The notes: generated by a model not told the origin, from the sequence alone. A DNA stretch of 64,000 nt from Epithemia pelagica (GCA_946965045.2 OX337237.1:3162001-3226000); one strand, 5' to 3'. Numbered from the stretch's first letter, positions 6,975 to 53,981 are shown. Translations and numbers: made by a program.

Positions 6975-9900
6975 GAAAAAAAGTGACTAGTACTGGCTAG
7001 GTGTCAGCATTACCCATCACCCCGAAGAAATGTTCAGTAACACGATACTGTCAATTGTAGATTCGAATCATTATTTCAATGAAACTCTCGCCATCACATT
7101 TGTGTTTCCTTGTCATTGTTGCGATTTGTGCGTTTCGGTCCATAAGAATTCGACAAACCGGGAGCAAGAAGAATCCAACAACCGTCTGGAATTGGTAGTG
7201 GTACGAGAACCAGGTGAAGAATGACCAGAAGGAACGAAGGAGCCAACTTGATGTGTCCCAAAAGGTGACCCGTTGTTCATGGTACAAATCAAGCAAGTGT
7301 TCCAGAAACGAGCAAACTGGTGTCCTCATCACCACCAAGACATGCACATCATCCAGTGTCAGTACGAACCTGCTCCATCCATTCCGGCGGTGGACGGTCC
7401 AGGTAGCGAGGTGACGAATTCTATATACTCCCCTCGCGCCAATGGTCTCGAATCATGAGGAGCCGCAGTTTCAGTCGAACATATAGCGTCTGGTGGACGT
7501 TGCCAAAACTCTCCAAGCGCACCGCCTTGGCACGACGGCCCGGTTCGAACCGCCACCACAAGATATCAGGGTTCGTATCCTCTCCTCGGTCGTTCCGTCT
7601 ACACGCAAGACGTCCGGTGGTACTAGTAGAGAGACAATACCAAGTCGCTGTTTCCATTGGTTGTATCCTGGATGCTGCTACTCATTGGTGGACAAGGATG
7701 GACCACAGTTCAGTCGTGCGCACACCAAAGCCCATTGGACGCACATTCCGAACCATATGCTGGGTCTTTCCTCGTTCAACGTTCTTGTTGGCTGGGCACT
7801 GGATACAAGTTATTCTTTTGATTGTCCTCGTCTCCACCACCACCAAGGGCATGCGGATTCGCCTTGTTGTTCGTTTGCGTAGTGTGCAAATTCCATGGGG
7901 ACGACGACTACACGACACAAAGTTCAGAAGACACAAAGTTTGGCGTCCCATTGTCTCCCATCTGTTGCCGACGAGAGACGGGCCCTGGACAAGAGGATCG
8001 TATCAGTTCGGGACAACCATTCCCCCAACAAGGACCTGGGGATGGATGACACGTTAGTCAGTCAGTTCGTCAGTTCTTTTGGGTTGGCGCATTCGTGGAA
8101 CCACAATCAACCACGACAGCCGCCTCGTCCGCATCGCTGTTCAGCAGGTTTCGGAATGGCTATATTCGTAGAGTGTCAACGCAACCACCAGAGCACGGCA
8201 CACAATTCCACCAGAACCACCACCGCCATGGCCAAACGACGCACATTCGAATAGAGAGGCCCTGGTTGGTGTGTGGCTGGATCTACTCTTGCTTGTCGTC
8301 GTCAGTATCATCCGCCTTGTGGCTTTTCTCTCAGACCTCGTTGTGCCAAACGAATCATCTTGTGGGGAATGCTTCGGGCCAAGTGTATTATATCGTCCGT
8401 GGCTGTCGTCTTTTGGGGGAGAACGAGGCCCGAACCAGACAACACTGTCATCGAGAGGGCGACCCAACCCTTGTGCGGATCGGATTCTTCTTCTTCTTGA
8501 GCCGTCCTGGTGGTTTGTGCTGCAGGTGCACCATGGATCCGCGGTTGCTTTTTGAAACACACAAGAGTGCCGGTAGTAGTGTTTGGTAGAACATACGTAG
8601 TAGTGCCCAATGGTTCCATTTTAGTGGGCCACCCCGACTCTGTCACACGGCCACAGAATCATTGTCACTCTACACACAAGAGTCGATTGCGGGTCGATCT
8701 ACCGTTGGATCGGACCCACCGTCCGTCGTAGAGAGGCCCCCAAGGAGAGAGGAGGAGCTACCGTTTGGCGTGTCGATATCGTTGGCAAACGTGTGTCGTG
8801 GTGGTGCGGTGGGCCGCTGTAGAGTGTTGTTCTGTTGTTGCGCTTTTCTATTCTACAATAGCTGGTCCCGAAACTGTGAAAGGATGATAATGGGACACAC
8901 ACTACAGCAGGCTCACGGAGAGGAGCTATGGTATACCATTCTAGTTGGTTCGGTTGGAACAGAACCACCAGTATTGGGAGATGCTCTGTTGCAACGAGAA
9001 CGACTCTCGTTGTTTTGTGGAAAAAAGTTCCAGTCCCCGTGGGGGATAATGGGGGAGCAGCAATGGTTTGGGCGGCGAAACGCCATCGTGTCTCGTCGTC
9101 GGGTTCGCCACAGCAACTTACACATGTAAGAAGGGGGTCTGACTAGTAGAGATAGAAATACTAGAAGTAGCTAGTAGATCGTAATAGTCATCTGGCCTCT
9201 ATTTCTGGAAAGTTCTAGCTCATTGGTAAAGACTTTCCTTCAAAATATGAAAGAGCACAACAAAGATACAATAGCTCTACTCTAGAGAGCTACTAGCATC
9301 AGGGTTTTCTAGACAGCTAGAGAGTCTAAGACAGAACCGATATCTCTATAGCATGCTAACTAGTTAGCTTTACTCTAAAAGGAGAGGACCATTGCGATTG
9401 CACACGCTCTCGCGTCGCGACTTCGAATCTCCCACCAAGGTGTGTGTGTAGATAGAGAACAACAACAACAACAACCAACACCAAGCGAGAGAGAACAGGA
9501 GTCTCTCTGTTGTCGGAACAAGGACCCTCTCCACCCACGGCAGCCGTTGCGGAATATTCCTTGGGGAGAGATTGAGAGAGAGCGTGAGAGAAACGCTGGC
9601 TTGTCTCTTCGATTTGCACTGTACTCTCTCTATTCGTAAAACAAGAGAAGAGTGTGTCTCTCTCCGCCCAACACAACCAAACCAACCAACAAACCAACAG
9701 CGTGGGTGGCTGTGACGACACGACAACCCCCCAACAAACGAACAACCGAACGAACCAACAAACAAGACTCTGGTGTGTTTGCTCGCTGGTGGCTTCGACT
9801 CCCTCGATACGTCCGCGAGCGGAGTGTGGTGTTGGATTGGTTTCGCAGTCTCCTCTCCCACTTTTGTGGTTTGGTGGAAACAAGACTCTCTCACAAGCCT

Positions 9901-10010
9901 CTAATACCAGTAGTGTCCACTTCCTTGGGACAAAATCAATCCAACAAGAAGAAGAAGAAACCCAATACAAACGAATTCACAATACGAACCTCCATACGAA
10001 CAAGCACACT

Positions 10011-10410
10011 ATGAGTCTCGTGGCACCCTTGGTGTCCTCGGCTGCAGCTGCAGCATCCTCTCCTCGTCATCGTCCCGTCACCCGAACTCCTCAAGACTTG
10101 TATCATTCCACAGTGCAGGATTCCTTGGGAGATTTTGCCGCGGCTCGAGACGACCAAACAACTGACGACGACAATCCTCCACCACAACAGCAACCACAAC
10201 AACAATCGCACTTGTCCCTCTCCTTGGCTTCCATGTCCTCGTCCCTGTCCAGTTTGGCCTCGCAGGCCTCGTTGGCGTGGAATCCACCACAAACCAACAG
10301 TCTGCAACTCGATCCGCCGCATGACGACACCAACCACACCCATAACGATGATGACGACGACGACGACATGTTTGATTTTGACGAGGAGGAAAAGAAACTG
10401 CAACAATTGC

Positions 10411-10454
<44 letters not shown>

Positions 10455-11933
10455 GACTACAACGATGAGGAACAGGTTGATGATGATGATGATGATTATG
10501 ATGATGATCAAGAGCATGATGACAACAAGAACGACAACGACCAATCGGAACCAGCCCCTCCTCCTTCACCAGCACACATGGAACCACCACCCGTCACCGG
10601 CATCTCACCACCCTCCACGAATCATTGTACCAGTGAAATGGCGTACCCCCACACCAACACGACGGTCGAATCCTTGATTCGACGACAAATGCAAGCCTCT
10701 CGAGCCTTGGAGGAACAAGAAGAAACCTCGTGGCTCTTGATTCAAACCATTTTGCAATTGCAAGCCCAATTGCAACATCAGCAACAATCCCAATCCCAAC
10801 CACAAGAAGCACAATCCCAATTACAACCACCACAACCACCCAAACAAGCTCAAGAAGCACCAGCACTCACCGTGACGACGCCACTCCCCACGAGCAGCAG
10901 TCTTGACGAGGACACGCACAATAACAACCACAACACCAACAACACCAAAATCCCCGACACGACACCACCAGACGTTCTTGTGCAGCGACTCCAAGACCAA
11001 GTGGAACACTATCAAACCAAGTGTCGTGACTACGAAACGCAACTGGACAAGCTGCAGGCACAAGTCCAAACCTTGCAACAAACCTGTCACGAACAAGAGG
11101 TGCAATTGCAAGATCGACAGGCGGTCTTGAACCTCATGGCGCAAAAAGTCACGGCCCTGTCCCAAACGCTACCACTCCATCCACAACAACAACACCCATT
11201 GCCGCAATCACAAGCGCCATGGAGTCCCGGAACGTCCAGTCCTCCGTCCACCAACCACCACAGTCAATCCCAACGGTCCAGTCCGAAGGAGGACACTGGC
11301 AAGGGTCCAAACCATGATAATGACGACAATGCGAACGAGAACCACCCGGACGACAATCTCCAGGAACCGGGTTCGACACACAGTCTGGCTTCGTCATCGT
11401 CCTTTCGATTGAAACAGGCCAAGGAAGCCCGAGAAGAGCGATTGCGCAATCTCATGAGTTTGTTTCGACGTCACAATAGTTGTCGCACAACCAGTAGCAG
11501 CAGCAATCAAAGCATTTCCAGTACGAGTAGCACCAAGAGTCATGCCAAGGCCAAACGATCGTCGTCAACGACGACCAACATGCCAACACCTACCTTGCCA
11601 TCCTTGTTGGACAAACTCTCGACCTTGGATGCTTCGACCGCGTCGTTACCCAAAACAACAACAACCAAATCGTCTCGTTCAGCAGGTGGTCCTTGGTTGT
11701 CCACCAATCGATCGTCCTCGTCGTCGTCGTCAGCCTCGTCGTCGGCCTGGATGACTCCCAAAGAAAAAGCAAACGAGGACGCCACGACCTTGTTGGCGCA
11801 ACCGTCCTTGTCTCCTTCGACGACCGGCAAGACGAAAGTGTCCAGTCCACGCTTGTTGCGAAAACGTCTCTTGAACAAACACAAACCAAGTCATCATCAT
11901 CATCACCACAAGGATACAACGTCACGACGATAA
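10011..11933 (+). CDS. Hypothetical low-complexity protein (about 640 aa) with a central coiled coil
   Basis: Long open frame; first plausible ATG at 10011 (MSLVAPLV). Q/D/S/T-rich, with heptad segment VLVQRLQDQVEHYQTKCRDYETQLDKLQAQVQTLQQ. No family recognised. Confidence 0.7.
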
Positions 11934-12592
11934 ACAACAACAACAGGGGAGTGTTTGGATTCCAAATCCGGAGGCAAATGGCACACAACAACGATCATGG
12001 TCACCAGGTGGGACACAATGGGGGACTGCGTACGGGGGAAGAACTGTTTGGATAGTTTTATTTGTTCATCAATAGTTGGGAAAGTATTATTGTGGTTCAT
12101 CCGTAGTTGGGATGCTTGGATAGTGTTTTCATTTGTTCATCCATATCGTTGGGATTTGTAGGAATATCTATCAACGATCAACGACGGGGACCGTAGAAAC
12201 TGTACGGGAATAGTGAGACACGTCTTTTTCGTCGTTTTTGACAAACGCATCAGGATGTAGACCACTGCGGCGTTTTCTCATGCGCAATAGTTGAACCTAC
12301 GGGCAAACAGTAAAGGCAATGGTCCCAATGAAGGCACCAACCCCAAACTCCTCTTTTTCTATTCTAGTTTACACATGGAAACAAAATGTCTTGTAGCAAA
12401 GGTTTAGGAGTGAATAGTCCCCGTTATACGCAACTGGTTCCCCACAGACAAACAAACAAGAAACAATAACATAGTGTACAACCAAAACGTGAAAGCGAGA
12501 ATGAACCATATAATATCATGTAGACCAGAAGCCACAAAAACAGACTCGAAAATGTCTCTTGTAGTGTGTGGCCCGAATATGTCTTGTTGTCA

Positions 12593-14602
12593 TTAGTAGT
12601 GATCATCGTCATCATCATTTCCATAGTCTGAGTCCTTTTTTCCGCTATGACTATACGTCACTGGTGCTCGGGCAAACTGAAAATCGCATTATCGAAACGA
12701 CCCAAAGACAAGCATCCCAACCGTTAAATAAAGCAAAGGAAATGATGTGAGAGATGTTATACTACCGTGTTGACAAAAGAAGAATGTCTTGGCAGCTGAA
12801 ACGTACCGTGTATGTCGTCTTGTGAATAGCAGGTGATCGCTTGCCCATTCCCATCATTCCCATCATTCCCATCATTCCCATACCTTTGCCCATTCGCATT
12901 CCCTTTCCTTTGCCTTTTCCCTTGCCCTTATTGTAGTAGGCTGCCCAATAATCTCCCTTTCCGGAATAGTCATCCTTCTTGCCCATTCCCATCATGCCTT
13001 GTTCCTTCTTCCCCTTGTTCGTAGTGGGTTTGAGAACGGGTGAAGGCGTAACGGCGGGTGCAGGTGTGTCGACCGGAGACGGTACTGGACCTGGCGTTGG
13101 ATTTGGGTTGGGGTCATTGCCAAGCAATTGATTTTGAATGGCCTCTATGTCTTGCAAGTCCGTCAAGTATGCCGAGGCATCGGCAGGACCTCCCACCACG
13201 CCATCTACAAGACAAGCCAAATCGTCCGACCCACAAATGGCAATCAGCTCATCCGATGCATTGGCCACCGAGTCTTGAATAGACGGGTCAAATGTCTCAA
13301 AGCAATTGGTACCATTAAAAGCAACGCTGAAAAAAAAGGAAACAGTGGGGTCGGAGATACACCAGTTCCGAGCACAATAATTGAAGGCCGTTTCGAAGCG
13401 AAGTTCGTTCGGGTCCGTGGGAATCTGTAGAACCTGACCAAACTGATCAATCCAGTCATCGTTTGGATTGGAGTTCCATACAGCCCTTGTACGCCATCTA
13501 CCAACTCGGGGGGAATGTACAATACTGTAGGAAAAAAGCAACCAAAAGAGTCGGAAAATCGATAAGCGAATTTCCATGTCATTGAAGTCAAACGTGACCC
13601 TTATTTCGCTGTCGTTAAAGAAAATGGTGGTACCTCCAACATTGTTGTCAATGCCTTGTGTGGGGAACAATTCTAAAAAGTTCACATAAAATATGAGAGT
13701 GCAAAATTCATCCGGAAATGCAGGAAGCGATACTTCCACGACTGGTGCGCGAGAAGTTTCCCGAGCAACCACACCGGTAGTGACGGACGCTTGCTGAATG
13801 TTTGAGACTCGGCTGAAACGGCCTTGGATTTCCAAATTGTCGGATTGTGCCAATATGAATTCACCTTCTGCTTGGCAGTCAAATTCAACCCCATCAAATG
13901 TTTGGATATGGGGATCGGCCAAGACAAAAGACGTTGTTCCATCTTCGTTGACAACCTCTGTTCCAAAACACTGCTCAAAGATTTCCAATGACCGAAACTG
14001 CATGGCAGAGTCAGTTGGGAAAGGTTCGTCATCACATAATTCAATCTCGGCATCATCTATATTTGTGCAATCCAAATAACACTCTTCACAAACCGCGCAT
14101 TCCTGACCGTTGATGAAAGCAGCACATTCTAAAAAGTTTCCATTAGGATCCCAAAACGCATTGAAACATGCAGAATCGGTCAAGCCAGCGACGTAGGAGA
14201 CGCACATGGTAACTGCTGTTTTACGTAGAGTCCAGATACCGGATTCCTCTCCAAAGTTACCGAGAGCTCACCAATTTCCGCACACACATCTCCAATCACC
14301 GGGTCCTGAACACAGTTATCGTCTCCTTCACAATCGGGAAATGTGCAAGTTAGTCCAAATGTGTTTGGTGCTAACGTGTCGTCACAGTCACAGACTGCAT
14401 TGGGCCCGAAGCCAACGCCCATGATGTAGTCGTTAATAATTTCTTCACAGGTTTGTAACCTCCGGTTTGCAGACAGCTTGGGTCGGTATTTGTCAGCGAG
14501 GCTACGACGAAGCTCCATCCTAGAGTCGGCATGTATTATCCGAACGTTGGACATGCCATACGCCACGAGCAAAAGACGAAGGATCGAAGCGGATCTCGCC
14601 AT
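12593..14602 (-). pseudogene. Secreted Cys-rich/GDPH-VWD protein, copy A, frameshifted; last exon 12593-12676, intron 12677-12806
   Basis: Signal peptide plus RRL, Cys-rich module, LADPHIQTFDG, P/T linker and K/G/M/Y tail. Relative to copy B it has a 1-nt deletion in the T4 run at 14219-14222, plus 5-nt (about 13562) and 7-nt (about 13469) deletions. The spliced end reads FARAPVTYSHSGKKDSDYGNDDDDDHY*. Confidence 0.8.
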
Positions 14603-14766
14603 GGCGTGTTTTTTTTATACACTTGTTGCAAGGATGCCACGGCCTTATTGTTCTTCCTTGATGAGAAAATAGTGGTTTGCAAACATTTGCAATCCGCGGA
14701 ACTGCGGAACTAAGGCGTCGCTGTTGTGTACGGGGATTGATCAATCTTTTAATTTGTGAGCGAACG

Positions 14767-14780
14767 GCCAAATTCGGCCA
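14767..14780 (-). promoter_or_regulatory. Conserved upstream motif GCCAAATTCGGCCA (copy A)
   Basis: Identical 14-mer upstream of all three GDPH/VWD paralogues; the flanks of copy A are otherwise diverged. Confidence 0.4.
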
Positions 14781-14989
14781 TGGTCGAGGATGGAGCGCTC
14801 GTGTCGGCGCATGGTCACATACAGCGCGCATCGCGCGCATCAGCAAATTACAGCTGGTCACGTGTCGATTCAGGAATCCCGCACGTGTCTTGTTGCCATG
14901 TGACTAGCAGGCGCGCAGAAGTATGCGAGTCGTCAGAAACGACTCTCTGGCACTCGATTCAGTCGAGTGAAGCAACTCTCCTGCCCCTT

Positions 14990-15780
14990 AGGACCCGAGC
15001 GCCGCTATGCTGACGTATTGGGGCTCTCTGATTGGCCTCGCTATCCGGATAGCGGATTAGCGGAGCCAAAGGGAAATAAACTCCACGATCTCCGTTAAAA
15101 GAACGCCGCTATCTCGCGTTGCGCGTACGCATTGCGCATATGCCCTCTCTTGTTTCGGTTAAAAAGGGGTGCGACCGCGGAAGTTGCGGAATTCAAACAA
15201 GACAATCAACGAGAGCACAAAGCATAAACCAAAGATGGAGGACTCGTTGTTCTCCCTCTTCATTGTTGACTGTCATGGTGAATCATGTTGTTGTTCATGG
15301 CCAATGTAGATGTAGGTTGTAGGTTGCAGTCCAATCTTCCTATTCCCTGTCCGATTTCCGACTGATTGTCTGATAATTGATAATCGAACTCATCAATAGT
15401 TTGAATGATGCATTTGTTTGATTGTTGCATTCCTTCTGATCCGTGATCCTCGAATCATCTTGCTGTGCATGGTTCTTGTCCCATTATAGGAAGTAGGGAA
15501 CACAACAATGGAAAAAGAGATGGTAAGCGATCGTCACAATCAATACGTGCCATTGCCATGTTTTCGACACGAGAGATTCAAAGTTTCACTGATGGCAGCA
15601 GACGTTAATTTCTTTCTGCCGACGGTTATATTTTGCTCCGCTATCCGCTATTTTCCCCGCTATTCGGGGCCCCAAATAGCGGCAAAAATAGCGGACAGCG
15701 GAGCTGTTTAGCGGTTAGAGGAGATGGTGGAGTTCGATAGCGGTTTTGGGGCCATTAGCGGGCCCGGGTGGAGATAGCCT
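14990..15780. mobile_element. Putative non-autonomous DNA transposon / MITE-like element with TAGCGG subterminal repeats
   Basis: About 13 TAGCGG/CCGCTA motifs in two terminal clusters. Imperfect inverted match between atagcggattagcggagccaaa (about 15049) and ttttgctccgctatccgctat (about 15631). Palindromes at 15039-15054 and 15657-15682. No convincing ORF inside and no clear TSD found. Confidence 0.5.
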
Positions 15781-15987
15781 TACTAAATGAGCAAACACAA
15801 AACGAGTGCCAATAGGAGTAGGTAGTTGATAGTAGCTGTGTTCGCTATGTATTCCCCGTTTATATGAACTAGGAGTAAGACAATATTGTACAACAAGTGG
15901 AGGAGGAGGGACCAAGAGAACATCACACAAGCATGAGAGACAATGCAGTCCTTTCTTCTTTGCCTGTTCAAGCAACGACATTGAGGC

Positions 15988-18044
15988 CTATTGGTCATCG
16001 TCATGATAGTCATCTTTGGAGTACGAGTCTTTCTTTCCGCTGTGGTCATAACTAATAGGAGCCTTGGCAAACTGTGAATCAAACAATTGAGAGACAAACA
16101 CAATCGATTCAAGTCAAGGTGAGAGGAGTGATTCCAAGTGGACAAACCACGTGGGACACGAGTTTGGACACGTACCGTATAAGTTGTCTTGTGAACCGCT
16201 GGTGCTCGCTTGCCCATTCCCATCATTTCCATACCTTTGCCTATACCCATGCCTTTACCCATACCCTTTCCTTTCGCTTTATTATAGTAGGCTGCCCAAT
16301 AATCTTCTTTTCCGTAATAGTCCTTCTTGCCCATTCCCATCATTTCTTGACCCTTGCCCTTGCCTTTACCCTTGCCTTTACCCTTGCTGCTACTCCCGGA
16401 GTCTTTCTTGCTTTCTTTCTTGCCTGTGGGATTCGTAGGTTTGAGAACGGGTGAAGGCGTAACGAAGGGTGCAGGTGTGTTAACGGGGGACGGTACTGGA
16501 CCAGGCGTTGGATTCGGGTCATTACCAAGAAACTGACTTTTAATGGCCTCCACCTCGGCCAGGTCGTCCAAGTACGCCGCGGCATCGGCGGGAGTTCCCA
16601 CCACTCCGTCCACCAGGCACGCCAAGTCGTCCGCACAAATGGCAAGCAGTGCATCGGATGCATTGGCCACTGCGTCTTGAATAGACGGGTCAAATGTCTC
16701 AAAGCAATTGGTACCGTCAAAAATAGGATTGGAAAACAAGGAACTTCTGGAGCTGAAGCTGCACCACGAAGCACAGTAACTATAGGCCGTCTCAAAGCGA
16801 AGTTCGTTCGGATCCGTGGGAATGGCAACCTGCCCGAAGAACGGATCAATCCAGTCATCGTTTGGATCGCCATTGGGAGTTCCATATAGACCTTGTACAC
16901 CATCTACCAAATCGGGAGGAATGTACAACACCGTAGAGAAAAAGCAACCAAAGGAGTCCGAGAATCGACGAAGCAAGCGAATTTCCATGTCATTGGAGTC
17001 AAACGTGACCCTGATTTCGCTGTCATTAAAGAAAATGGTGGCACCTCCAACGTTGTTGTCAATTCCTTGTGTGGGAAACTCTTGAATAAAGTCCACAAAA
17101 AAGTTGGGAGTGCAAGATCCATCCGGAAATTCAGGAAGTGATACTTCCACCACTGTGAAAGTAGGATCTTGAGCAACCACACCGGTAGTAATGGACGCTT
17201 GTTGAAGGTTTGGGACTCGGCTGAAACGGCCTTGAATCCGCAAGAAGGCGGACTGGGCCAAGATGAAGTCACCTTGTAGCTGACAGTCAAACTCCACACC
17301 ATCAAACGTTTGGATATGAGGATCGCCAAGCACAAAAGAAGCTGCCCCTGTGGTGTTGACATCCGTCCCATTGTTGCCGTCGATAATCTCCTCAGTAAAG
17401 CATTGTTCAAACACTTCATCATAGTTCAAAAAGACAAAGACCGAGTCGTTGGGATAGCGGCCTGTTTCACATACATTAACCACTGTACTGTCACCAATAT
17501 TGGAGCAATCCAGATTACAATCATCACAAAAACCGCATTGCTGGCCGTTGATAAAGCCGGCACATTCGGTAAATTCCTGAGTCTCCAAATCATACAACTC
17601 GTCGTAACAGACATAATCAGTAAAGCCAGAAACGTAGGAGACACACATATTGAATACACTGTATGCGTAGCCACCACTTGGATTTTGCTCGAACAAGGCC
17701 GAGATAAAATCTATTTCGGTACAGATAGGTTCCGTAACTGAGGGATCCTCGACACAGTTCAACTCGCCACCGCATTTCGGAAAGGTACATGTGACTCCAA
17801 ACGTTGAGGGTGCCAGAGATTCGTAACAGACACACTCTGCATTGGCGACAATACCTAAGTCATCAAGAACGATTTCGATAAAGCTGTCACAGTCTTGCAA
17901 CCTCCGATTGTGGGAGATCTTGGGTCGGTATTTGTCTTGGAGTTTCCGATGTAGGCTCAGTCTGGGATCGGCTTGTATTATCCGAACGTTAGACATGCAA
18001 AACGCAAGGATTGCGACACAAAGAATCGATATGGATCGCGACAT
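15988..18044 (-). CDS. Secreted Cys-rich/GDPH-VWD putative adhesive or extracellular-matrix protein, copy B (intact, 650 aa); exons 18044-16176 and 16071-15988
   Basis: MSRSISILCVAILAFC signal peptide, HRKL/NRRL propeptide, Cys-rich module, LGDPHIQTFDG VWD-type domain, YCASWC..C..ICADDLACLVD module, PNPTPGPVPSP linker and KGKGKG/GMGK/YWAAYY tail. A phase-0 intron at 16072-16175 (GTACGT...CACAG) gives the end FAKAPISYDHSGKKDSYSKDDYHDDDQ*. Confidence 0.85.
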
Positions 18045-18780
18045 GATGATGATGTGGTTTTTTTTGTTTTACCGGTCCGCAAAGGCTTGGTTTGATTTGA
18101 TTATCGATCTAGTGCCTTGTTATTCCTCTCTGCAAACAATGGTGGTGGATTACCTTCCTTATAGGTCGGCACCCTCTTTGAATCAATGAGAAAATGACAA
18201 CAAATGACCTCTTGATTTGACATTTTCGCAGTTTCCAGAGGACAGAATCCCTCCGTGTGTCGTCGGAGGGGATTCATGAATCGTTTGACTTCCTCTGTGT
18301 GAGCTACTGGACTCGGTCTGCCAAATTCGGCCAGGATGGGCTGGGGGGGATTGCAATCGCGCTCGTGTGTCAATTATTGATGAAGTGGTGACCAGCGTCC
18401 GTCCGGCAGTCCTGTCGCGAGCGATTCCCTCAAAAGACACACTCACTCTCATTAAGTATCTATTCGTATGGGATCATATCGGCTGGCGCGCGTTTGTTCA
18501 GCGACTTCCTTCACATACACAAAACCTGCACGCACCGCGACTCTCTGTCTCCTGTCTGCTCTCCAAACACGAAAGGCAAGATGAGAGAAATCCCGCATTA
18601 CAAATCACAAGATTAAGGAGTAGGTACTCCTACGAATCGATCAGAGTCCCCAACGAATGACCCTACTACAATACGTCAAAGCCTCTCTCAAATCACACAT
18701 GGGAAACATAGAGTAGCATTCGAAAGAGCATGTCCTTGCTCTTTCCCCACAAGAGAGGAACGGCTTCAGAAGCATTTGTC
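18045..18780. repeat. Upstream region of copy B, paralogous to 21911-22570
   Basis: Shared blocks include gattgcaatcgcgctcgtgtg, cactcactctcattaagtat, tactcctacgaatcgatcag and aacgaatgaccctactacaatac. Confidence 0.85.
18320..18333 (-). promoter_or_regulatory. Conserved upstream motif GCCAAATTCGGCCA (copy B)
   Basis: Same 14-mer as upstream of copies A and C. Confidence 0.4.
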
Positions 18781-19929
18781 TTCGTGAATTTCGCATGGTC
18801 GTTTCTAGTGGAACTGAACCCAATTTCTATACACAAACAACAATGTCGTGATCTCTAGCTAAAAGTTTGAATTGCGAAAGTATTTCGACACTCAGTAAAC
18901 TGCGATAGAACACGTGTGAAACGACCGCCCTCAGCGTGCTCATGGGGTATCCCATTGTGTAGATGCGCTGCACTCCTTCACAATCGCACGTAAGAATTGT
19001 GAATCTGTCGATCGTATCGCAATGACAGTACCATCGGTGGTGGTTCTAGGAGAACCTTACTACATCAGCCATGTCGAGTACTTTGATGTTTTCGTCTTGA
19101 TGTCATTCATGGGGCGGCCATTTTTCTTGTTGCATCCATAGAGGTCTCGGGACTGTCGAATCACCAAGGTCAAAACCATCCACTAGACTATTGCAGCGTC
19201 TATTCTGATGGTATGCGTTTTAACGAAGAACGAGTCAAAGCGAATAACTTCTTTGAGAAATGTACCACTGTGAATTCTTGTACAATAGAGAAGGTAACCA
19301 ACGATATGTATGCTTGCAAATTGCTAGCCATGGCGCTTCCAAGCCGGACTGAAGTTGGTCACTTCATCCGTCCGATCTCTGGGATGAAACCAGTCTTCCT
19401 CTGCCCGGCAGCCCTCCAGCCCCTAGACAGTCCACATTCGGCTTCGTTTGCGCCGACAGCAACTACAACGGCTTTGACATCTCCGCTGTCCATGATTCCC
19501 AAATTCTTGCATTGTGGTGAACCGCAACCCACCCGACACACTCATTATCACGCGAGTAGTAGTGGACGGATGCCGAAAGTTCAATGATACCAGCATCGTG
19601 GCACTTCCCTTGGCTATACTCCGGTATTGCCAAAGTCCTCTTCAAATTCTTCTGCCCCTGTTGTGACGTCCTTCGATAAGCCCTCAAATGGTTCTCATCA
19701 ACATGGATTTTCGAAAAGGGCCTCGCCAGGGAGGCAACTGGAGTGGATTCTCTCCACTTCTTTCGAGGCTCTTTTGCACCACGGGCATAACGCTGGCGAT
19801 CCTCGCATGGGTCCAATGCCAGCCACAACCCATCAAAATCCATTTGCCAGTGTCGGGGTTCAAGTGTCGAAGCATATCGGAGGACAACCAATGCACCAGT
19901 GTACGCGAGTTTATAACTATCTACGATGC

Positions 19930-21910
19930 CTATTGATCATCGTCATGATAGTCATCTTTGGAGTACGAGTCTTTCTTTCCACTGTGACCATACGTAATAG
20001 GAGCCCGAGCAAACTGCGAATCAAACAAATAAAACACAAGGGCAATGAAGTCATATCAAAGTTAGAAGTGTGATTCCAAGTTGACCAACCACATGAAACA
20101 CGAGTTGGGACACGTACCGTATAAGTTGTCTTGTGAACAGCTGGCGCTCGCTTGCCCATTCCCATCATGCCCATCATTCCCATACCTTTACCCATACCCA
20201 TGCCTTTGCCCATACCCTTTCCTTTCGCTTTATTATAGTAGGCTGCCCAATAATCTCCTTTTCCGTAATAGTCCTTCTTGCCCATTCCCATCATTCCTTG
20301 ACCCTTGCCCTTGCCTTTACCCTTGCTGCTACTCCCGGAGTCTTTTTTGCTTTCTTTCTTGCCCGTGGGATTCGTAGGTTTGAGAAGAGGTGAAGGTGTG
20401 TTGACGGGGGACGGTACTGGAACAAGCTGACTTTGAATGGCCTCCACTTCGGCCAAGTCCAACAAGTATGCCGCGGCATCGGCGGGAGTTCCCACCACTC
20501 CGTCCACCAGACACGCCAAGTCGTCCGCACAAATGTCCAGCAGCGCATCGGATGCATTTGCCACTGAATCTTGAATAAACAGGTCAAATGGCTCCAAGCA
20601 ATTGGTACCATCAAAAGTACCATTGGTAAACAAGGAAAAGTCGGGGTCGGAGATACACCAGTTCTGAGCGCAATAATCATAGGCCGTTTCAAAGCGAAGC
20701 TCATTGGGGTCCGTGGGAATCTGCAGAACCTGACCGAACCGATCAATCCAGTCATCGTTTGGATCGCCATTGGGAGTTCCATACAAACCGTCTACGCCTT
20801 CGACCAAATCGGGTGGAATGTACAACACCGTAGAGAAAAAACAACCAAAAGAGTCCGAGAATCGACGAAGCAAGCGAATTTCCAAGTCATTGTCGTCAAA
20901 CGTGACCCTAATTTCTCTTTCATTAAAGAAAATGGTGGCCCCTTCAATATTGTTGTCAATGCCTTGCGTGGGAAATTCTTGGGCAAGGTTCACAAAGAAG
21001 TTGGGAGTGCAAAACGGATCCGGAAATCCAGGAAGCGATACTTCCACCAATGTCGAATCAGGGTCCAGAGCAGCCACACCGGTGGTAACGGAGGCTTGCT
21101 GGAGGTTTGGGACTCGGCTGAAACGCCCTTGAATAACCAAGTCTAATGATTGTACCAAAACAAAGTCACCCTCTGCTTGACAGTCAAACTCCACACCGTC
21201 AAATGTTTGAATATGAGGATCACCAAGCAAGGAAGAAGCTGCCCCCGTGGTGTTGACATCGTAAAAGCATTGTTCAAGCACTTCAAAAAAGTTAAAAACC
21301 GAGTCGGTGCGAATTTGGCCTCCATCATCAGTGCAATCATCAATCACAGCACTGTCACCGAGATTGGAGCAATCAAAGACACAGTCATCACAAATAGCGC
21401 ATTGCTGGCCGTTGATAGAGCCAGAACATCCGATAAAGGCATCAGTCTCCAAATCGTACAACTCGTTGTAACAAACAGACTCAGTAAAGCCAGAGACGTA
21501 GGAGACACATATGTTGAATTCAGTGTAGGAGTAGTCTCCGTTTCAATTTTGCTGGAACAAGCCCGAAAATTGATCAACTATACCGCGCAGATAGGTTCCG
21601 TAAATGAGGGATCCTCGAGACAGTTCAACTCGGCTTGGCATTCCGGAAAGGTACATGTGACCCCAAATGTTGAGGGTGCCAGAGATTCGTCACAGACACA
21701 CTCTGCATTGGTACTAAGATCTTCGTCATCAAGAAAGAATTCGATAATGCTGTCACAGTCTTGCAACCTCCGATTGTGGGAGATCTTGGGTCGGTATTTA
21801 TCTTGAAGTTTCCGATGTAGGCTCATTCTGGAATCAGCTTGTATTATCCGAACGTTAGACATGCAAAACGCAAGGATTGCGACACAAAGAATCGAAATGG
21901 ATCGCAACAT
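19930..21910 (-). pseudogene. Secreted Cys-rich/GDPH-VWD protein, copy C, disrupted; last exon 19930-20013, intron 20014-20117
   Basis: Highly similar to copy B. A frameshift after EPICA gives TAG at 21578-21580, and in the restored frame there is an in-frame TGA at 21543-21545 where copy B has CCA. The spliced end reads FARAPITYGHSGKKDSYSKDDYHDDDQ*. Confidence 0.8.
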
Positions 21911-22570
21911 GATGATGATGATGATGTCGTTGTTTTTGGTTTTTCCGGTCCGCAAAGGCTTGGTTTGTTTCTCGATCTAGCAAGTGCCTTGTTGTTCCTA
22001 TCTGCGGTGGACAGCCTTCCTTGTAGCTCGGCACCGTCTTGGAAAGACAACAAATGACCTCGTTATTTTTATTTACATTTTCACATTCTCCAGAGGCTCC
22101 CTGTGGGGATTCATCAATCGTTTGACTACTGGACTCTCGGTGCCAAATTCGGCCAGGGGATGCGTCTGATGGGGATTGCAATCGCGCTCGTGTGTAGTGT
22201 GTTGCGTCTGGCAATCTTGTCGCGAGCGATTCCCCCAGGAAACACTCACTCTCATTAAGTATGTATTCGTATGGGACCAAATCGACTCGCGCGCGCCTGC
22301 AGTTACAGGTGAAACGACTTCCTCCACACGTGCCGTGATACAGCAGGCACGCACGGCGACTCTCTGTCTCGTGTGGGGAGCCCCTCGACACACGAAACAC
22401 GAAAAGAGACTTGCCACCACTTGCTCCCATAATAGCTCAAGGTATAGGAGTAGCTATACTCCTACGAATCGATCAGTCTCAAACGAATGACCCTACTACA
22501 ATACACCAAAGCCTCTCTCACATCACACAAAGAGCATGTCCCCAAAGAGAGGAACGGATTCAAAAGCATC
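21911..22570. repeat. Upstream region of copy C, paralogous to 18045-18780
   Basis: Same shared blocks, in the same order, as upstream of copy B. Confidence 0.85.
22142..22155 (-). promoter_or_regulatory. Conserved upstream motif GCCAAATTCGGCCA (copy C)
   Basis: Same 14-mer as upstream of copies A and B. Confidence 0.4.
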
Positions 22571-23311
22571 ATCCTACACACGACACACACGCAATCCATC
22601 CGAGATTCCCCAGGTCGACAGAGACACGCCGAATCTCAGGAGCGTAGTTCTGCAAGAAGACAAACCATTGGCTCCTGTCGTCATAAAGAAAAAGACATGT
22701 GGGTGACTGGAACAAATAGTCATGCTGTGTCCATTATTCGCTGCACACAAGGTTTCGCTCGTTCCTCATGTTGTCTTGTTGTGTGGTGTGTTCAATCGAG
22801 GGTAGGGCGATTCCGGTTTTCTACAAACTGTAGTGTCGTGTCATTTCGTCGTCACTCCTGCGCTAGGAAATGTCAGCTTCTCCAAAGCATCCTGGATGGC
22901 AGCAATCATCCGTGATATACTTCCAACATGAAGAACTGGCGTACGATCCATCTCCACCGACGTGCGAGAGTCTAGCTAGCTAGCTAGCTATATTCAAGAG
23001 GCTGAAGCACAAAATGCGATGCTAGTCTAGACTTGGGACCAATGCACTTGTCTACTACGAGTAGGTAGACGACACCACGTGTGATGATACGACAATGGGA
23101 GGTATAACGTTTGGAATCCAACATCATAACATGCGGGGCCTCTACTAGAGATTGGGGGACATGTCGATCGATGAAACGTGATCCAAAACTACAAATTTAT
23201 AAATATATACAATATGCATGGATCTACCTAGATATATATTATATATAATAAGATGTATCTTTTTCTTGTTCGTTTCCCACACAAACTATAGGAAAACGCC
23301 TCGGCCGTAGT

Positions 23312-23863
23312 TTACGACCGATCCAACAAATAGCGGTGGTCCTGGTCGTCGTCGTTGGACTGTGTGTGGTAGTTGGAATGGTGGTGGTGGTGCTGCAATC
23401 CATCCACAATGAGGACATGCCACCAATACCAACACCAATCCGACATGACCGCCAAGGTGTCTAAAAGACGGCGACGCCAGAGTCCCGTGGTGGTTGCAGG
23501 TTGTTGTTGTTGTTTTTTGCGACTCGTCATCATCCACCGAAGCAAAGAGGCCGGTGGTGGTCGTTGAGGTGGATGGGGCGGGGTCCGACTTCGAATCCAC
23601 GACAAGGACGAATGATGCAACCGCTCTGAAATGTCTTGTTGAAAGTGTTGCAATACAATCTTCTTGGAATTGGATGGGATCGGTCGTGACGACGAGTCAG
23701 TGTCGTGGAGAGAAAACGAGGAACACAAGCGAGTACTAATACCATCATCACTGGTTGTGGTGCGTCGCCATGTGCTGGTACTGGGAAGGGGCGGCGAAAA
23801 GGCTCGTCCGCCCGAGGCAACGAGGACAACGACGAGGAAGATTGTCGGTAGCGTCATCATCAT
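23312..23863 (-). CDS. Small hypothetical protein with a bipartite plastid-targeting-like N-terminus
   Basis: MTLPTIFLVVVLVASGGRA|FSPPLPSTST resembles signal peptide plus ASAFAP-type cleavage motif plus S/T/R-rich transit peptide. The mature part is not recognised. Confidence 0.5.
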   Translation of the reverse strand: MMMTLPTIFLVVVLVASGGRAFSPPLPSTSTWRRTTTSDDGISTRLCSSFSLHDTDSSSRPIPSNSKKIVLQHFQQDISERLHHSSLSWIRSRTPPHPPQRPPPASLLRWMMTSRKKQQQQPATTTGLWRRRLLDTLAVMSDWCWYWWHVLIVDGLQHHHHHSNYHTQSNDDDQDHRYLLDRS

Positions 23864-24475
23864 GAGGGCTTTGATTGTATTTGTAAAGTCCTCGTTCTCG
23901 TAGATTCTTCTTGGACTCTTACGGATGATGTGATGGATTCCTTTTGAATGTGCTTCTCATCTCTATATCCATAAAAAGACACGATCATCTTTGGCACAAC
24001 AGGAACAGGCCCCTTGGACCATCTGTTGTGCTTCTCATTTTGCCTTCTCGTTGTAACGCGACTGAACCAGCGACCGAGATCGCGCCGGCCAGTCTTCCGC
24101 ATTGTCGCGCCCGTCGACTGGCCAAAATTGAGTCCAACACCGCCACACACAAATAGGCAAACCCACCAAAATCCCCGCAGATTCCTCCCAACCGACCACA
24201 AGATCGCTTCATGTTTTGGACCGTCTCGAAAACACACATCCGTCGAATTTGGGGACAAGAATTGGGACGGACCCACGACAACGGAACAAAAATAACAACA
24301 ATCCGAAGCGCATGAGCACCGATTCCTGGATGACACTTGCCATGCTGATCTATACCGACACCCACAATCTCCATCACGACATTGGACGCAACATTACTTG
24401 TCATCCTTGTAGTCCTCGTTGTAGGAACTCCAACCACTACAAATCCAGGGAGTGTGTGAAACAAAAAAAAGGATC

Positions 24476-26950
24476 ATGAGATACGGTGGTTCTTCTTCTT
24501 GTTCTTTCAAGGCGGGTGGCACTTGTTGTCTGGTTTTGTGGACCCTGGTGGTCCTCGTCACGGCCAAACGGGCTCTGTCGCAACGCAGCAGTAGCAGCTT
24601 CAGTAGCAGCTTTAGTAGCACTGCTACCCATTCCTCCTCCCGTCGGCAATCGCCAGTGCCATCTTCCTCCTCCTCCAGTTCCTCCAGCTCGTCGTCGTCG
24701 CCGAATACGTACTACACTGCCTTTGACGATGCCTCGTGGGCCATTACGTCCACCAATCTGTCCACGACCATTTTGAGTGCCGACAAGCAAGCTCTCTACG
24801 ATGACTTTGTCCAAACCTGTCGCAACAATGAGTGTGACGACAAGGAAGAAGCCCATCGCATCTACATGAATCGTCATCAACCGTCCTCTGTTTACAATTA
24901 TACGACAAGCGGTTTTCAAAAAGTTCAAGCACCGTCACAGTTGATGCAATTGTTGCATACCGTGTGGGATCGTCACCAGGAGGACGACAGTGTCGTTGTC
25001 GAAGACACTGCGCTCGACAGTTATTATCACACGGCCGTGCCACCGACCACGTACCTGTCCTTGCACGATCATGGCGGACCGGCCTTGGAAGCGGCCATTT
25101 CGCAAGCGGCCCGATCTGTGTTGGAGGAATGGACCGGACAACGCTTGGCCGCCAGTTCCGTCTATGGCATTCGCATTTATCACAATCAATCCATTTTAAC
25201 GCCCCATGTCGATCGATTGCCATTGGGTACGTGTGTATGAGAGTGTCCCAAGAGCCAAAACGTACTAGTTGCAGGGAATCCGAAGGATGATGATGACGAC
25301 GATAGAATGATTGACATCCCTGTCGTGGTCCAATCGTTGCAATGTGTGTGTGTTTGTCGTTTTCTCACTGTCTCTGTCTTGCTCTGTCCTTTACACTTTT
25401 TCATTTTCTCTTCCCTCTCTCGTGTGTTTTGCTTTGGGAATCCGTCTTGGCTTTTTTGTGTTGTTCTTGTTTTTTTGTTGTTGTGTGGTTCCGTCCCAAC
25501 ACACACACACACAGTGTGTTCGGCCATTCTCAATGTGGCCCAAGATGTGGAGGAGGATTGGATGTTGGAAGTCTATGGTCATGAGGGACACGCCACCAAT
25601 GTGACGATGCAACCCGGAGACATGGTCTTGTACGAAAGTCATGCCACGATTCATGGGAGACCCTTTCCCCTACAAGGCCGCTATTATGCCAATGTCTTTG
25701 TCCATTTTCAACCCATGGGACCCGCCCATTCCACCCAACCCATCATCATGACGAATGCCAATGGAACCAATCCATATCATTATCGTCGTCTCGCTCCACC
25801 CTTTGTGGTACCGGGATCCGTGTGGGAAACCCAATACTACCAGGAATTTCCTCGTGGATGGACCTTGTTGACGGATTTGGAACAATTGGCCTCGCATGGC
25901 GATGTCTATACCTTGCAATACGTGGTCCAACGACAAGTCGACTTGGTCACGGATCCGCAACGGCAGTGCAATCTCTTGTATCTGGCTATTCAAAATCGTC
26001 ACGTCGAGTTGGTCCACTACTTGATTCACGACCTGAACTATACCGTCAATCTCGTCTGTCATGGACAAACGCCTCTTGATTGGAGTATTCCGCAACAATC
26101 CCAATCTCCAGAACCACGACGAGACCATACGAGTAGTACCAACGACCACCAGAATGCCATTCGAGACCTGTTGATTCATCACGGAGCTCAACCCTATGAC
26201 CAATTGATTCGGGACCATCCACAGTTGCGACAAGTCTGGGACGATCCCTGTCAGGTCATGAGTGCCTTGGTATGGACCTTGGAGGGGGACGACGAGGATG
26301 ACGATGAGGAGGAGGACAATGACGACGAGGATGAAGTGGACGAAATTCTCGACTTTTTCTTTCACCATCTCGAGTACCATGTCAACATGATTTGTTTTCG
26401 CACGGCCGCGACACCCCTGGATTTGGTAGCCGCCTGGAAGGAAGGAACTGGTGTGAGTCTCCATGGCGGCGGCATGGGCCGGTATTTGCAACGCCACGGA
26501 GGAACCTATCAATCCGCCCTGACCACCCGCCATTCGCCACAACCACCACAGCGACACGACTCGCGATGCAACGTCATGCAGGAGGCAATGGAGTATGGGA
26601 GTATTGCCGTCCTGGATTTTTTGTTGGATACACTTCATTACGACATTCAAATGCAGTGTACAGACTCATCGGAAGATGATGATGATGAGGAGGACGAGGA
26701 GTACCAAGAAGAAGAACCAGAACAAGAGGAGAAGGATGCCGACAGACTGGAGACTCGTGACATGGACAAAGAAGATAATGACAATGATCCTGACACGAAC
26801 AACAACAACAACAAGAGACTGAGAACCCCCTTGGATGTCGCATTGGATACCTTTCAGGATCATTCTCATGAATTAGTGTTGCATTTGACCAACTGGGGCG
26901 CCCTCACGCATCGACAATGGCAGTATTACCAGCAACAACGCCATCCATGA
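24476..26950 (+). CDS. Secreted 2OG-Fe(II) oxygenase (prolyl-4-hydroxylase-like) fused to ankyrin-like repeats; exons 24476-25226 and 25515-26950 (728 aa)
   Basis: An intron at 25227-25514 (GTACGT...CACAG) joins VYGIRIYHNQSILTPHVDRLPL to VCSAILNVAQ...QPGDMVLYESHATIHGRP (HxD...H triad). Three modules ending in TPLD. N-terminal hydrophobic signal. Confidence 0.8.
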
Positions 26951-53080: not shown

Positions 53081-53394
53081 TCACCCTCTGAAGTTTCTCG
53101 ACGCGCAAAGACTCACGATCGTACACCACACGTCGGAGTTTGCTCAAAATCGCGCGTCTCATCCGTTACGTCATTGTGAGCGTGTGGATGATTCACGTGC
53201 AAGTCGCATTGTCGGTTTGGAATCGATACGTTGACTGTGTCTCCTTGTCGTCTCTCATCATCAGTTATTTTTTTTTGCGAAACGAGATTGTGAGAAAGGG
53301 CGCGACTCCAAATTTGAGAATTGTTGCGCGGGCGGCGGGCGCTCGAAAAAATTGCGCACGTACAAGTCTGCCCTTCCTGCACGAGGGCACGAAC

Positions 53395-53408
53395 TTTGCC
53401 GCGCCAAA
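53395..53408. promoter_or_regulatory. Overlapping two-strand E2F-like site TTTGCCGCGCCAAA in the divergent promoter (repeated at 57779 and 62163)
   Basis: Matches TTTSSCGC on both strands (TTTGCCGC and TTTGGCGC), within a CGCG-rich intergenic region. Confidence 0.3.
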
Positions 53409-53981
53409 ACAATGGTCGTCTGTCATTTATCCGAGATGCAGATGGAGCACACATACCGTCTGTCCGTCCATCCTGAGCACGACGCCTGGCAGGCACATCG
53501 GGGCGGCGGCCTCGCAGGCTCGAAATTCGGAAGAGGTGTTGTGACAAGATCTTTCGAACATTCCGTTGGTTCGGTCAGCGCTCGCTCTCCCCCAAGCCAA
53601 GAAGAAAGAAGACAGCACTCCAAATTTTTTGCATTTCATCGAAGCCACACACACGCACCCCACAAACTGCCAAAAAAAAGATTCTGTTTTCTCTTGTTCC
53701 CTTCTTTGGTGCCCAGCAACAAAACATCAAACAAAGAAGGAGCAGATCATCGAAACACATGATTGACACACATCATCCCCATCTCAGAATCGAAGGATCC
53801 AAGGAGAGTTCAAAGTGCTATTAGGTTCGAGGTTTAGCTCTATAAGAGAGTGCTGCTGCTGCTTGTTCCTCTTATTTTTGTGCATTGAATTCGATATATC
53901 CAACGACCGCATCCGTCTGTTTGTGCTCATACTATACACGTGGTGTTCCATTCCATTCACAACGACCGTGACAACGACACC

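Follow-up and report, generated by a model that had tools for sequence, protein, structure and literature searches.

Although the adhesion and gliding of diatoms under water drive biofouling and the formation of biofilms, only a handful of the participating proteins have been characterised. The closest described relatives of the genes reported here are the diatom GDPH proteins, which two reports place in the adhesive trails and raphe of Amphora (10.1101/2023.03.06.531300, PMC7335047). The trail proteins Amphora coffeaeformis Ac629 and its relatives (Lachnit et al. 2019, as cited in those two reports) are secreted, modular and diatom-restricted, with a Pro/Thr-rich linker and a conserved domain of ~270 residues around the GDPH motif. 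Seminavis, for which 61-87 GDPH loci are reported, shows tandem expansion of these genes (PMC8027222).

We analysed a 64,000-nt stretch of Epithemia pelagica DNA (the window), in which three tandem paralogues, A, B and C, all lie on the minus strand. On sequence grounds, these are a previously undescribed, lineage-restricted branch of the known diatom GDPH-domain family of predicted secreted proteins. They share with the Ac629 type each of the properties named above. In contrast to that type, the domain of B is not C-terminal, being followed by 150 residues that include a tail and an acidic tip. It is also preceded by a 16-Cys N-terminal module of unrecognised fold. Only seven GDPH loci were found in the genome, unlike the large set of Seminavis. 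At least 11 silicon-transporter (SIT) genes (E 1e-226) identify the genome as that of a diatom, as the initial annotation had supposed. With one intact gene and so few GDPH loci, the locus is a compact and tractable case. In this conserved sub-branch, a predicted VWD+C8 'GDPH' domain is coupled to a cationic Met/Tyr tail under strong constraint, a tail for which we found no description in the accessible literature. The locus raises the questions of whether the tail binds mucilage or silica, whether the GD|PH bond self-cleaves and whether Met chemistry plays a role.

Structure and integrity of the tandem paralogues

The copies are spaced ~3.4 and ~3.9 kb apart and share 61-96% DNA identity in register. 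A common layout of signal peptide, RXL propeptide, 16-Cys module, GDPH domain, Pro-rich linker and Lys/Gly/Met/Tyr tail is followed in each by an intron of 104-130 nt and a short acidic last exon (Table 1). The outer bounds first assigned to the family agree with this layout, 12593 being the end of the last exon of A and 21910 the ATG of C. Likewise, every sequence feature listed in the initial annotation was found in B, by translation and composition, where it had been placed. The proposal of a tandem family held for the three-fold repeat and failed for the number of intact genes, as only B, one of the three copies, has an uninterrupted frame in this assembly. Overall, the locus looks like one working gene (B) beside two tandem paralogues, A and C, whose breaks are recent. 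An Rfam scan of 11000-25000 returned no match.

Table 1. Features of the three paralogues, with positions counted from the first letter of the window
Feature	Position	Strand	Details
Gene A, broken paralogue	12593..14602	-	exon 1 12807-14602, intron 12677-12806, exon 2 12593-12676
Gene B, sole intact copy	15988..18044	-	translation; GT..AG intron; spliced contig; intact in second haplotype too
Gene C, broken paralogue on this haplotype	19930..21910	-	exon 1 20118-21910, intron 20014-20117, exon 2 19930-20013
B exon 1	16176-18044	-	623 codons
B intron	16072-16175	-	GT..AG ends
B exon 2	15988-16071	-	27 codons + stop
B predicted signal peptide, aa 1-25	17970..18044	-	hydrophobic core, Kyte-Doolittle up to 3.1, end ...IIQA|D; judged by inspection
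B basic propeptide, aa 26-49	17898..17969	-	RKL aa 33-35, RRL aa 47-49
B N-terminal 16-Cys module, aa 50-222	17379..17897	-	strongly acidic; fold without recognised match
B GDPH domain, aa 229-500, VWD + C8 modules	16545..17360	-	structure model and structural matches
B GDPH motif, aa 240-243, putative Asp-Pro autocleavage site	17316..17327	-	followed by TFDG
B Pro/Thr/Val-rich linker, aa 501-545	16410..16544	-	20% Pro over aa 481-545
B Lys/Gly/Met/Tyr tail, aa 546-623	16176..16409	-	net charge +13
B last exon, acidic Asp/Tyr/His tip	15988..16071	-	FAKAP...DDYHDDDQ; kept in A and C

In B, the 16 Cys residues of the N-terminal module fall in aa 52-215, and aa 424-476 hold a second cluster of Cys. 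The folded head, comprising the 16-Cys module and the GDPH domain, is acidic with a net charge of about -58. The disordered, polycationic tail (24% G, 23% K, 12% M and 8% Y) contains KKESKKDSGSSSKGKGKG..., MMGMGKK, DYWAAYYNK and GMGKGMG repeats. DYWAAYYNK is the same in all three paralogues, and the length of the linker differs among them through in-frame indels. Homology searches used the exon 1 product of B. Exon 2, once translated, was a query of its own in local comparisons; joined exons served solely for local work on composition and coordinates and for local scans of motifs and tail composition.

Gene B is transcribed and spliced. A contig from X4, a probable RNA run, joins 16071 to 16176 at a depth of 318, skipping exactly 16072-16175 with its GT..AG ends. 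Contigs of this run cover B, and none falls on the intergenic stretch 18150-18749.

The frame of A is broken at ~14221 (-1 nt), ~13563 (-5) and ~13470 (-7), and the segment between the latter two deletions has its conserved GLYGTPNGDPNDDW core scrambled. C carries two extra nucleotides at ~21583-21584, leading to a TAG, and a TGA at 21543-21545. A short intron that would rescue the frameshift and stop of C was considered and rejected, as no frame-restoring GT..AG pair is present and the sole candidate is 48 nt long. Homologue P0007 reads openly through the lesion site of C, and read contigs of the other haplotype have TCC where C has TGA. In this second haplotype (L020), A and C are broken by different lesions and B is intact, with a last exon of 100% identity. 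Assembly error is an unlikely source of the lesions, which include 5- and 7-nt deletions and one substitution to TGA; B is lesion-free in both haplotypes, and both the TGA and the TCC version appear in read contigs. Separately, a 1-nt difference in the T6 run at 20836-20841 is ambiguous.

Allelic dN/dS is still 0.2-0.3 (0.28 for B), which makes the breaks look recent, and the decay of A and C speaks against dosage being strongly required. That each of two haplotypes has two of its three copies broken might also suggest that the whole cluster, B included, is a decaying functionless remnant. We hold this to be most improbable, given that B is intact on both haplotypes at the dN/dS above, is correctly spliced and is covered by the probable RNA run.

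Relatives and conservation

A total of 550 proteins are homologous to B at E <= 1e-3, and 59 of them reach E <= 1e-30; nearly all align over aa ~232-500. Word-index searches of proteins returned few hits. Among 60 aligned homologues, the H of the GDPH motif is invariant and the D and P are at least 90% conserved, which together with the size of the family bears out the original assignment to it. Other conserved family motifs are GL.G..N..DDW, NWC and CLVDG.

Belonging to the GDPH family does not in itself settle what a protein does. Immotile cells, too, up-regulate GDPH proteins, and non-motility roles have been proposed (PMC8027222). In Seminavis, sex pheromone elicits a response of the GDPH genes in either mating type, immotile cells included, and these genes have been proposed to act in mating adhesion and in pads and stalks (PMC8027222). 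B could by this token be a cell-cell adhesion or recognition protein in sexual reproduction or chain/pad formation, not in substratum gliding, and the recent haplotype-specific loss of two of three paralogues would fit relaxed selection and conditional use. We find such a role improbable: B is expressed in X4, the single probable RNA run available (culture state not given), and the A/B/C locus has no sex-specific feature.

Proteins at 34-40% identity in other assemblies have the same architecture, with basic Met/aromatic tails. Lys/Met/aromatic tails occur in the five near-full-length homologues with the N module (P0006, P0010, P0016, P0017 and P0018) and, despite other N-termini, in P0033 and P0059; the FxFAK motif of the last exon recurs in P0010 and P0016. 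Within its own genome, the Lys/Gly/Met/Tyr tail is confined to the A/B/C locus. The Met-rich tail had not been recognised from described proteins at the outset, and we likewise found no description of it in the accessible literature; it is not unique to the locus, given the tails of these uncharacterised homologues. A search for protein-language-model look-alikes of the tail gave no usable match. Comparison of the paralogues shows stronger constraint on the tail than on any other segment of the protein, with dN/dS of 0.05-0.18 at dS up to 0.98.

Eight Cys of the N-terminal module are invariant across 11 sequences. The model of this module has a pLDDT of 71, and its matches in the PDB and ESM Atlas are weak and of a generic beta-sheet kind only (Foldseek against the PDB, E > 0.01; VIA, best Z 6.2; ESM Atlas, TM < 0.5). 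Among homologues, an RXL site 7-10 residues ahead of the first module Cys is found only in P0006/P0154 (RNL) and P0018 (RQL), and none precedes the module in P0010, P0016 and P0017.

Fold of the GDPH domain and disulfide polymerisation

The AF2 model of B has a pLDDT of 87 overall and ~95 in the GDPH domain. VIA aligned 226 residues to MUC5AC 428-683 and VWF 383-634 (Z 23.9, rmsd 2.6 Å), Foldseek returned E 3.6e-12 for the domain, and further structural matches were MUC2 D4 (Z 17.6) and RGMB (Z 11.9). As modelled, the GDPH domain is the VWD and C8 of mucin/VWF D assemblies, its VWD beta-sandwich and helical C8 superposing on those of mucins, VWF and FCGBP at Z 17-24. The VWD-like fold expected at the outset is thereby confirmed in the model and extended to VWD + C8, with Z reaching 23.9 among MUC5AC, VWF, MUC2 and FCGBP.

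Sequence identity to the D assemblies is 14-18%. The match to Pfam VWD (PF00094) is confined to ~30 residues at the motif (HMM positions ~3-31 or 5-41), at or just below threshold, with 22.8 bits for B, 25.5 for C and 20.8 for A against a gathering threshold of 22.9. RGM_C likewise matches solely around the GDPH motif, and a PDB sequence search with aa 49-500 gave no meaningful match. In B, as in those VWDs that cleave at GDPH (MUC2 D4, FCGBP and RGM), the motif opens the VWD; MUC2 D4 and RGMB self-cleave at this motif.

The initial annotation went on to propose a mucin-type polymerising scaffold, and here the domain composition speaks against it. The structural match stops with C8 at aa 500, after which the Pro-rich linker begins; there is no Cys beyond aa 476, and the TIL and E modules of the VWD-C8-TIL-E set are absent from B. 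The position that we take to correspond to the CGLC site of VWF reads GLYG in B and GLLG in the family consensus, and Cys counts are even in both the N module (16) and the GDPH domain (8). Lacking TIL/E modules and CGLC, B is not expected to form disulfide multimers, and its polymerisation in the mucin/VWF style is not supported. A homodimer prediction with two copies of aa 216-500, run without controls, scored 0.00 and is evidence for neither side.

Possible roles of B and its cationic tail

On balance, we lean towards an extracellular role for B as an adhesive or matrix protein, with a cationic tail that binds polyanions. Following removal of the signal peptide and RXL propeptide, B would be secreted, and its GD|PH bond would probably self-cleave in an acidic secretory compartment, as in MUC2 D4, FCGBP and RGM. 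The cationic, aromatic, Met-rich tail may anchor the acidic head to polyanions through electrostatic, cation-pi and hydrophobic contacts, candidate partners being acidic or sulfated mucilage, the silica surface and the heads of neighbouring molecules. B would then be a cohesive or adhesive part of the extracellular matrix (trail, pad or cell-cell glue), with no part played by the disulfide route of mucins and VWF.

Animal underwater adhesives (mussel foot proteins, sandcastle-worm cement) have cationic Gly/Tyr-rich disordered segments like those of the B tail and, again like B, oppositely charged blocks suited to complex coacervation, and a sea-star footprint protein offers a VWD in an adhesive (PMC7335047). 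There is no homology between these adhesives and B, whose high Met content has no counterpart there. The original step from K/Y/G composition to an adhesive is weak, since an Amphora protein with K/Y and KG repeats that was chosen in this manner is a cell-wall protein (PMC4220933). Dependence of B on DOPA is unlikely, since a separate study cited in PMC4220933 is said to report none in Amphora.

The serious rival to an adhesive role, unlikely as we judge it, is that B is a cell-wall (biosilica-associated) protein whose RXL-processed, Lys-cluster tail would target the VWD head to silica or silica deposition. The RXL propeptide (RKL at aa 33, RRL at aa 47) and the dense Lys clusters KGKGKGKGKGKG and SKKDSGSSSKGK speak for this, and SKKDSGSSSKGKGK presumably resembles the silaffin R5 peptide. 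Silaffins, cingulins and AC3362 share with B an RXL propeptide and a disordered region with clustered Lys, KG repeats, Ser-rich stretches and Tyr- or Trp-rich patches; unlike B, they have no VWD and are not Met-rich, the likeness being one of composition alone. Amphora AC3362, a K/Y-rich protein with KG repeats, localises to the cell wall without a role in adhesion, and Lys-rich repeats promote biosilica association in silaffins (PMC4220933). Against a biosilica role, A lacks the SKKDSGSSSKGKG stretch and yet retains the Met/Gly/Lys/Tyr part, which is strongly constrained. We know of no VWD or GDPH protein in biosilica proteomes, and the terms VWD and GDPH are both absent from a biosilica proteome paper. 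The published localisation of a GDPH protein is to the raphe and trails (10.1101/2023.03.06.531300, PMC7335047).

A more speculative proposal, to which we give little credence, is that the tail acts as a new kind of extracellular self-coacervating 'sticky block' whose cohesion is switched by methionine oxidation (peroxide or haloperoxidase chemistry). It would bind its own acidic head and acidic mucilage when reduced, and release them when oxidised. If true, such a switch would give a motile diatom make-and-break control of traction and trail release. Phase-separating Met-rich low-complexity domains, for which Met oxidation acts as a switch (reviewed in PMC8394241; TDP-43, PMC7682574), resemble the B tail in their dense Met and Gly/Tyr-containing disorder, but are intracellular and not polycationic, and the likeness is one of analogy.

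The Met residues could also be read as a soft-metal ligand for Cu(I)/Ag(I), making B a surface copper buffer; the analogues are copper transporters, with their Met motifs, and MUC2 D1, an assembly that binds copper. Such motifs are ligands of Cu(I), the tail has recurrent MXM and MXXXM spacings (MMGMG, GMGKGMGMG), and MUC2 D1 with Cu(II) (7prl) is a structural neighbour at Z 18.7. We rate this reading as very improbable: the tail has no His or Cys partners, the adjacent genes include none that is copper-related, and homologous tails vary between Met/Gly and Met/Lys/Trp types, as would be expected of a compositional, physical role more than of a defined metal site.

Gene structure, transcription and decay of the cluster

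The minus strand between 12.5 and 22 kb carries three tandem paralogues, here termed A, B and C, with DNA repeats in register at spacings of ~3.4 and ~3.9 kb and identities of 61–96%. Of the limits set in the initial annotation, 12593 is where A ends and 21910 is where C starts. Exon 1 of B is an uninterrupted frame of 623 codons from an ATG at 18044 to 16176, ending in an ACG/GTACGT donor (slash, exon boundary) that is followed 104 nt later by an acceptor (...CACAG/TTTGCC). All of the protein features listed in that annotation were recovered in B from its translation and composition, and the DYWAAYYNK motif described as invariant is indeed identical in three of three copies.

Features of the cluster, of protein B and of the collinear contig
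Feature	Position	Strand	Remarks
A, intron	12677-12806	-	donor and acceptor same as B
A, exon 2	12593-12676	-	last exon same as B
B, exon 2	15988-16071	-	84 nt; acidic Asp/Tyr/His tip, then stop
C, intron	20014-20117	-	donor and acceptor same as B
C, exon 2	19930-20013	-	last exon same as B
Protein B, N-terminus			hydrophobic
Protein B, RKL	aa 33
Protein B, RRL	aa 47
Protein B, N module	aa 52-215		16 Cys
Protein B, GDPH motif	aa 240
Protein B, second Cys group	aa 424-476		followed by Pro-rich linker
Protein B, tail			78 residues; 24% Gly, 23% Lys, 12% Met, 8% Tyr; net charge +13
L020, collinear contig	L020:3377-11575		collinear with window 12374-25236

Read contigs from four sequencing runs of the same organism were placed on 15950-21949. 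Run X4 spans the genes but not the intergenic stretch 18150-18749, and one of its contigs omits precisely 16072-16175, with ends CT..AC on the plus strand and thus GT..AG on the gene strand. No such splice joint was found in the three other runs, which do cover intergenic DNA. X4 is therefore most likely RNA. The intron is genuine, as is the acidic exon at the end of the gene, and B is an expressed gene. In the spacer between B and C (18750-19800), contigs of this probable RNA run reach depths of 27–67, and copies of its right part (~19317-19900) that are 84–90% identical occur at C10:1564338-1565476; this spacer may represent a transcribed repeat, or a small gene, that has escaped annotation.

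In this assembly A has three frame changes (-1 nt at ~14221, -5 at 13563 and -7 at 13470), with the conserved GLYGTPNGDPNDDW core scrambled between the last two, while C has an insertion of 2 nt at ~21583-21584 leading to a TAG, and also a TGA at 21543-21545. A public 775-kb contig (L020; ENA ERZ21939226 ctg1321l) is collinear and 91–96% identical. It seems to represent the second haplotype or else a very closely related strain, and its variants agree with those in the read contigs (for example TCC for the TGA, T5 for the T6 run at 20836 and, in B, an in-frame deletion of 18 nt). On L020 the allele of B (B′) is intact too. Its C allele (C′) has a +1 change at aa 35, a -1 change at aa 367 and a stop at aa 266 that coincides with the end of the homologue P0007, together with putative extra stops at B-aligned codons 16 and 38, and its A allele (A′) has -1 changes at aa 396 and 436 and a putative stop at B-aligned codon 147. 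No lesion is common to both haplotypes in comparisons of A with A′ and C with C′. Allelic dN/dS is 0.28 for B, 0.20 for C and 0.32 for A, so that purifying selection is still visible in the allelic substitutions; A and C thus seem to have lost their function only a short time ago; alternatively, null alleles may be segregating.

Synonymous divergence between B and C is low at both gene ends, which suggests some gene conversion there. The spliced X4 contig of B′ runs directly past the stop into a C-like 3′ flank (15986 and 19911), and the B and C 3′ UTRs have therefore been exchanged between haplotypes, via gene conversion or unequal crossing-over. Divergence of the second haplotype (or close strain) from the window is 4–9%, and the allelic dS of 0.09–0.15 in these genes is unusually deep, which may reflect a hybrid or long-asexual lineage.

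Predicted fold of the GDPH domain and the N module

Searches and fold modelling used the protein encoded by exon 1; exon 2 was compared separately. Pfam recognised no more than the ~30 residues at the start of VWD that surround GDPH, with a score at or just below threshold, while an exhaustive profile search returned 550 homologues, almost all of them matching over aa ~232–500. An AlphaFold2 model of aa 49–500, built from a 60-sequence alignment, reached a pLDDT of 87 overall and ~95 in the GDPH domain. In structural superposition it matches VWD+C8 in MUC5AC, VWF D2/D3, MUC2 D1–D4 and FCGBP (Z up to 23.9, rmsd 2.6 Å, 226 residues) and also RGMB (Z 11.9), upholding the VWD-like fold proposed earlier. 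On the strength of the mucin, VWF and FCGBP superpositions, the ‘diatom-specific’ GDPH domain is predicted to be a VWD+C8 pair.

The further proposal of mucin-type polymerisation fared worse. Mucins and VWF have TIL and E modules and a CGLC motif for polymerising, whereas protein B is without all three: the position that we take to be equivalent to the CGLC of VWF reads GLYG, and Cys counts are even. A homodimer prediction scored 0.00, a result that speaks neither for nor against dimerisation. Asp-Pro self-cleavage at GDPH is established for MUC2 D4, FCGBP and RGM; GDPH is invariant or nearly so in the family alignment, and by analogy would be compatible with such cleavage.

The genome holds seven GDPH loci, and the four outside this cluster are multi-GDPH genes with acidic linkers. 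The N module, with eight invariant Cys, was found in this genome at this locus only, and structure comparisons of its predicted model gave no convincing match to a known fold.

Distribution and constraint of the basic tail

Five near-full-length homologues from other assemblies (samples ERZ25042306, SRR24079432 and others), with 34–40% identity (P0006, P0010, P0016, P0017 and P0018), contain the N module, which the alignment shows in all five alongside the GDPH domain and a linker rich in Pro. A sixth N-module homologue (P0019) ends within the linker. An RXL motif precedes the N module in P0006/P0154 and P0018 only, being absent from P0010, P0016 and P0017 in the alignment, and the basic propeptide site is not conserved as RXL among N-module homologues.

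The Lys/Gly/Met/Tyr tail was found in its own genome at this locus only. In all five near-full-length homologues the tail is basic and rich in Met and aromatic residues, against a Met background of 1.6% in the hit set: that of P0018 contains KGKGKG, a seven-Tyr run and MMNMNMNMMMGMK, and that of P0016 is of Lys/Trp/Met type. P0033 carries MMMMKKKK, though its N-terminus differs. A short FxFAK motif near the homologue C-terminus corresponds to the B exon junction, TYT/FAK. Across the three local copies, dN/dS is lowest in the tail (0.05–0.10 for A versus B or C, dS 0.86–0.98), compared with ~0.3 for VWD. By these comparisons the tail is constrained, and it is not unique to this locus. P0006 (L021:1338-3800, ENA ERZ25042306 ctg2390l) has a GTAAGT donor right behind its basic, Met-containing tail, with a likely downstream exon, and P0157 and P0158 are its paralogues in the same assembly; the arrangement resembles a local expansion that arose in parallel and kept the intron position.

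Possible roles, novelty and genomic surroundings

In Amphora, the GDPH protein Ac629 is reported to localise to the raphe and adhesive trails (10.1101/2023.03.06.531300, PMC7335047). Seminavis is reported to have vWD/GDPH proteins and a tandem-expanded vWD family; GDPH genes respond in its immotile cells too, and pads, stalks and mating are named as possible roles (PMC8027222). By composition, B has an acidic head (~-58), a cationic tail (+13) and an acidic tip, a layout that would suit electrostatic and cation-pi binding of polyanions by the tail and head-to-tail self-association with the acidic heads. Given this literature and charge layout, we favour an extracellular adhesive or matrix component, in which the tail would be the anchoring or cohesive block. 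A role in the cell wall is the strongest alternative: RXL processing together with Lys clusters characterises silaffin-type proteins, and AC3362, a K/Y/KG-repeat protein selected because its composition resembles that of mussel adhesives, turned out to belong to the wall (PMC4220933). A separate study, as cited in the AC3362 paper, reported no DOPA in Amphora (PMC4220933). More speculatively, the Met motifs might bind copper, or the tail might form a redox-switchable Met-rich condensate (PMC8394241). About 6% of sampled words of this locus occur in a biofilm metagenome (X5), a hint that this diatom, or one closely related to it, is a biofilm inhabitant.

The GDPH family has been described before, as have its relation to VWD and its expansion in tandem. 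New, as far as we found, are the sub-branch combining the 16-Cys N module, GDPH domain, constrained Lys/Gly/Met/aromatic tail and acidic tip, the explicit VWD+C8-only structure predicted by the model, and a cluster with one intact and two decaying copies in both haplotypes. Within the limited literature accessible to us, we found no published description of the Lys/Met tail.

At least 11 full-length silicon transporter (SIT) loci identify the host as a diatom, with SIT genes in tandem pairs at C11:1001834-1006098 and C11:3159754-3166955. Adjoining A, a 759-codon open frame (9654-11933, plus strand) with Gln/Asn/Asp/Ser runs (poly-Q, poly-D) and a His6 end would encode a low-complexity protein. 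A 595-codon frame at 39847-41634 (minus strand) contains a ferredoxin-dependent bilin reductase domain (PF05996, E 3e-24), which fits a photosynthetic host. Finally, 51869-63673 holds three tandem units of ~4.4 kb, each with a minus-strand ORF of ~402 codons and a plus-strand ORF of 321 codons.
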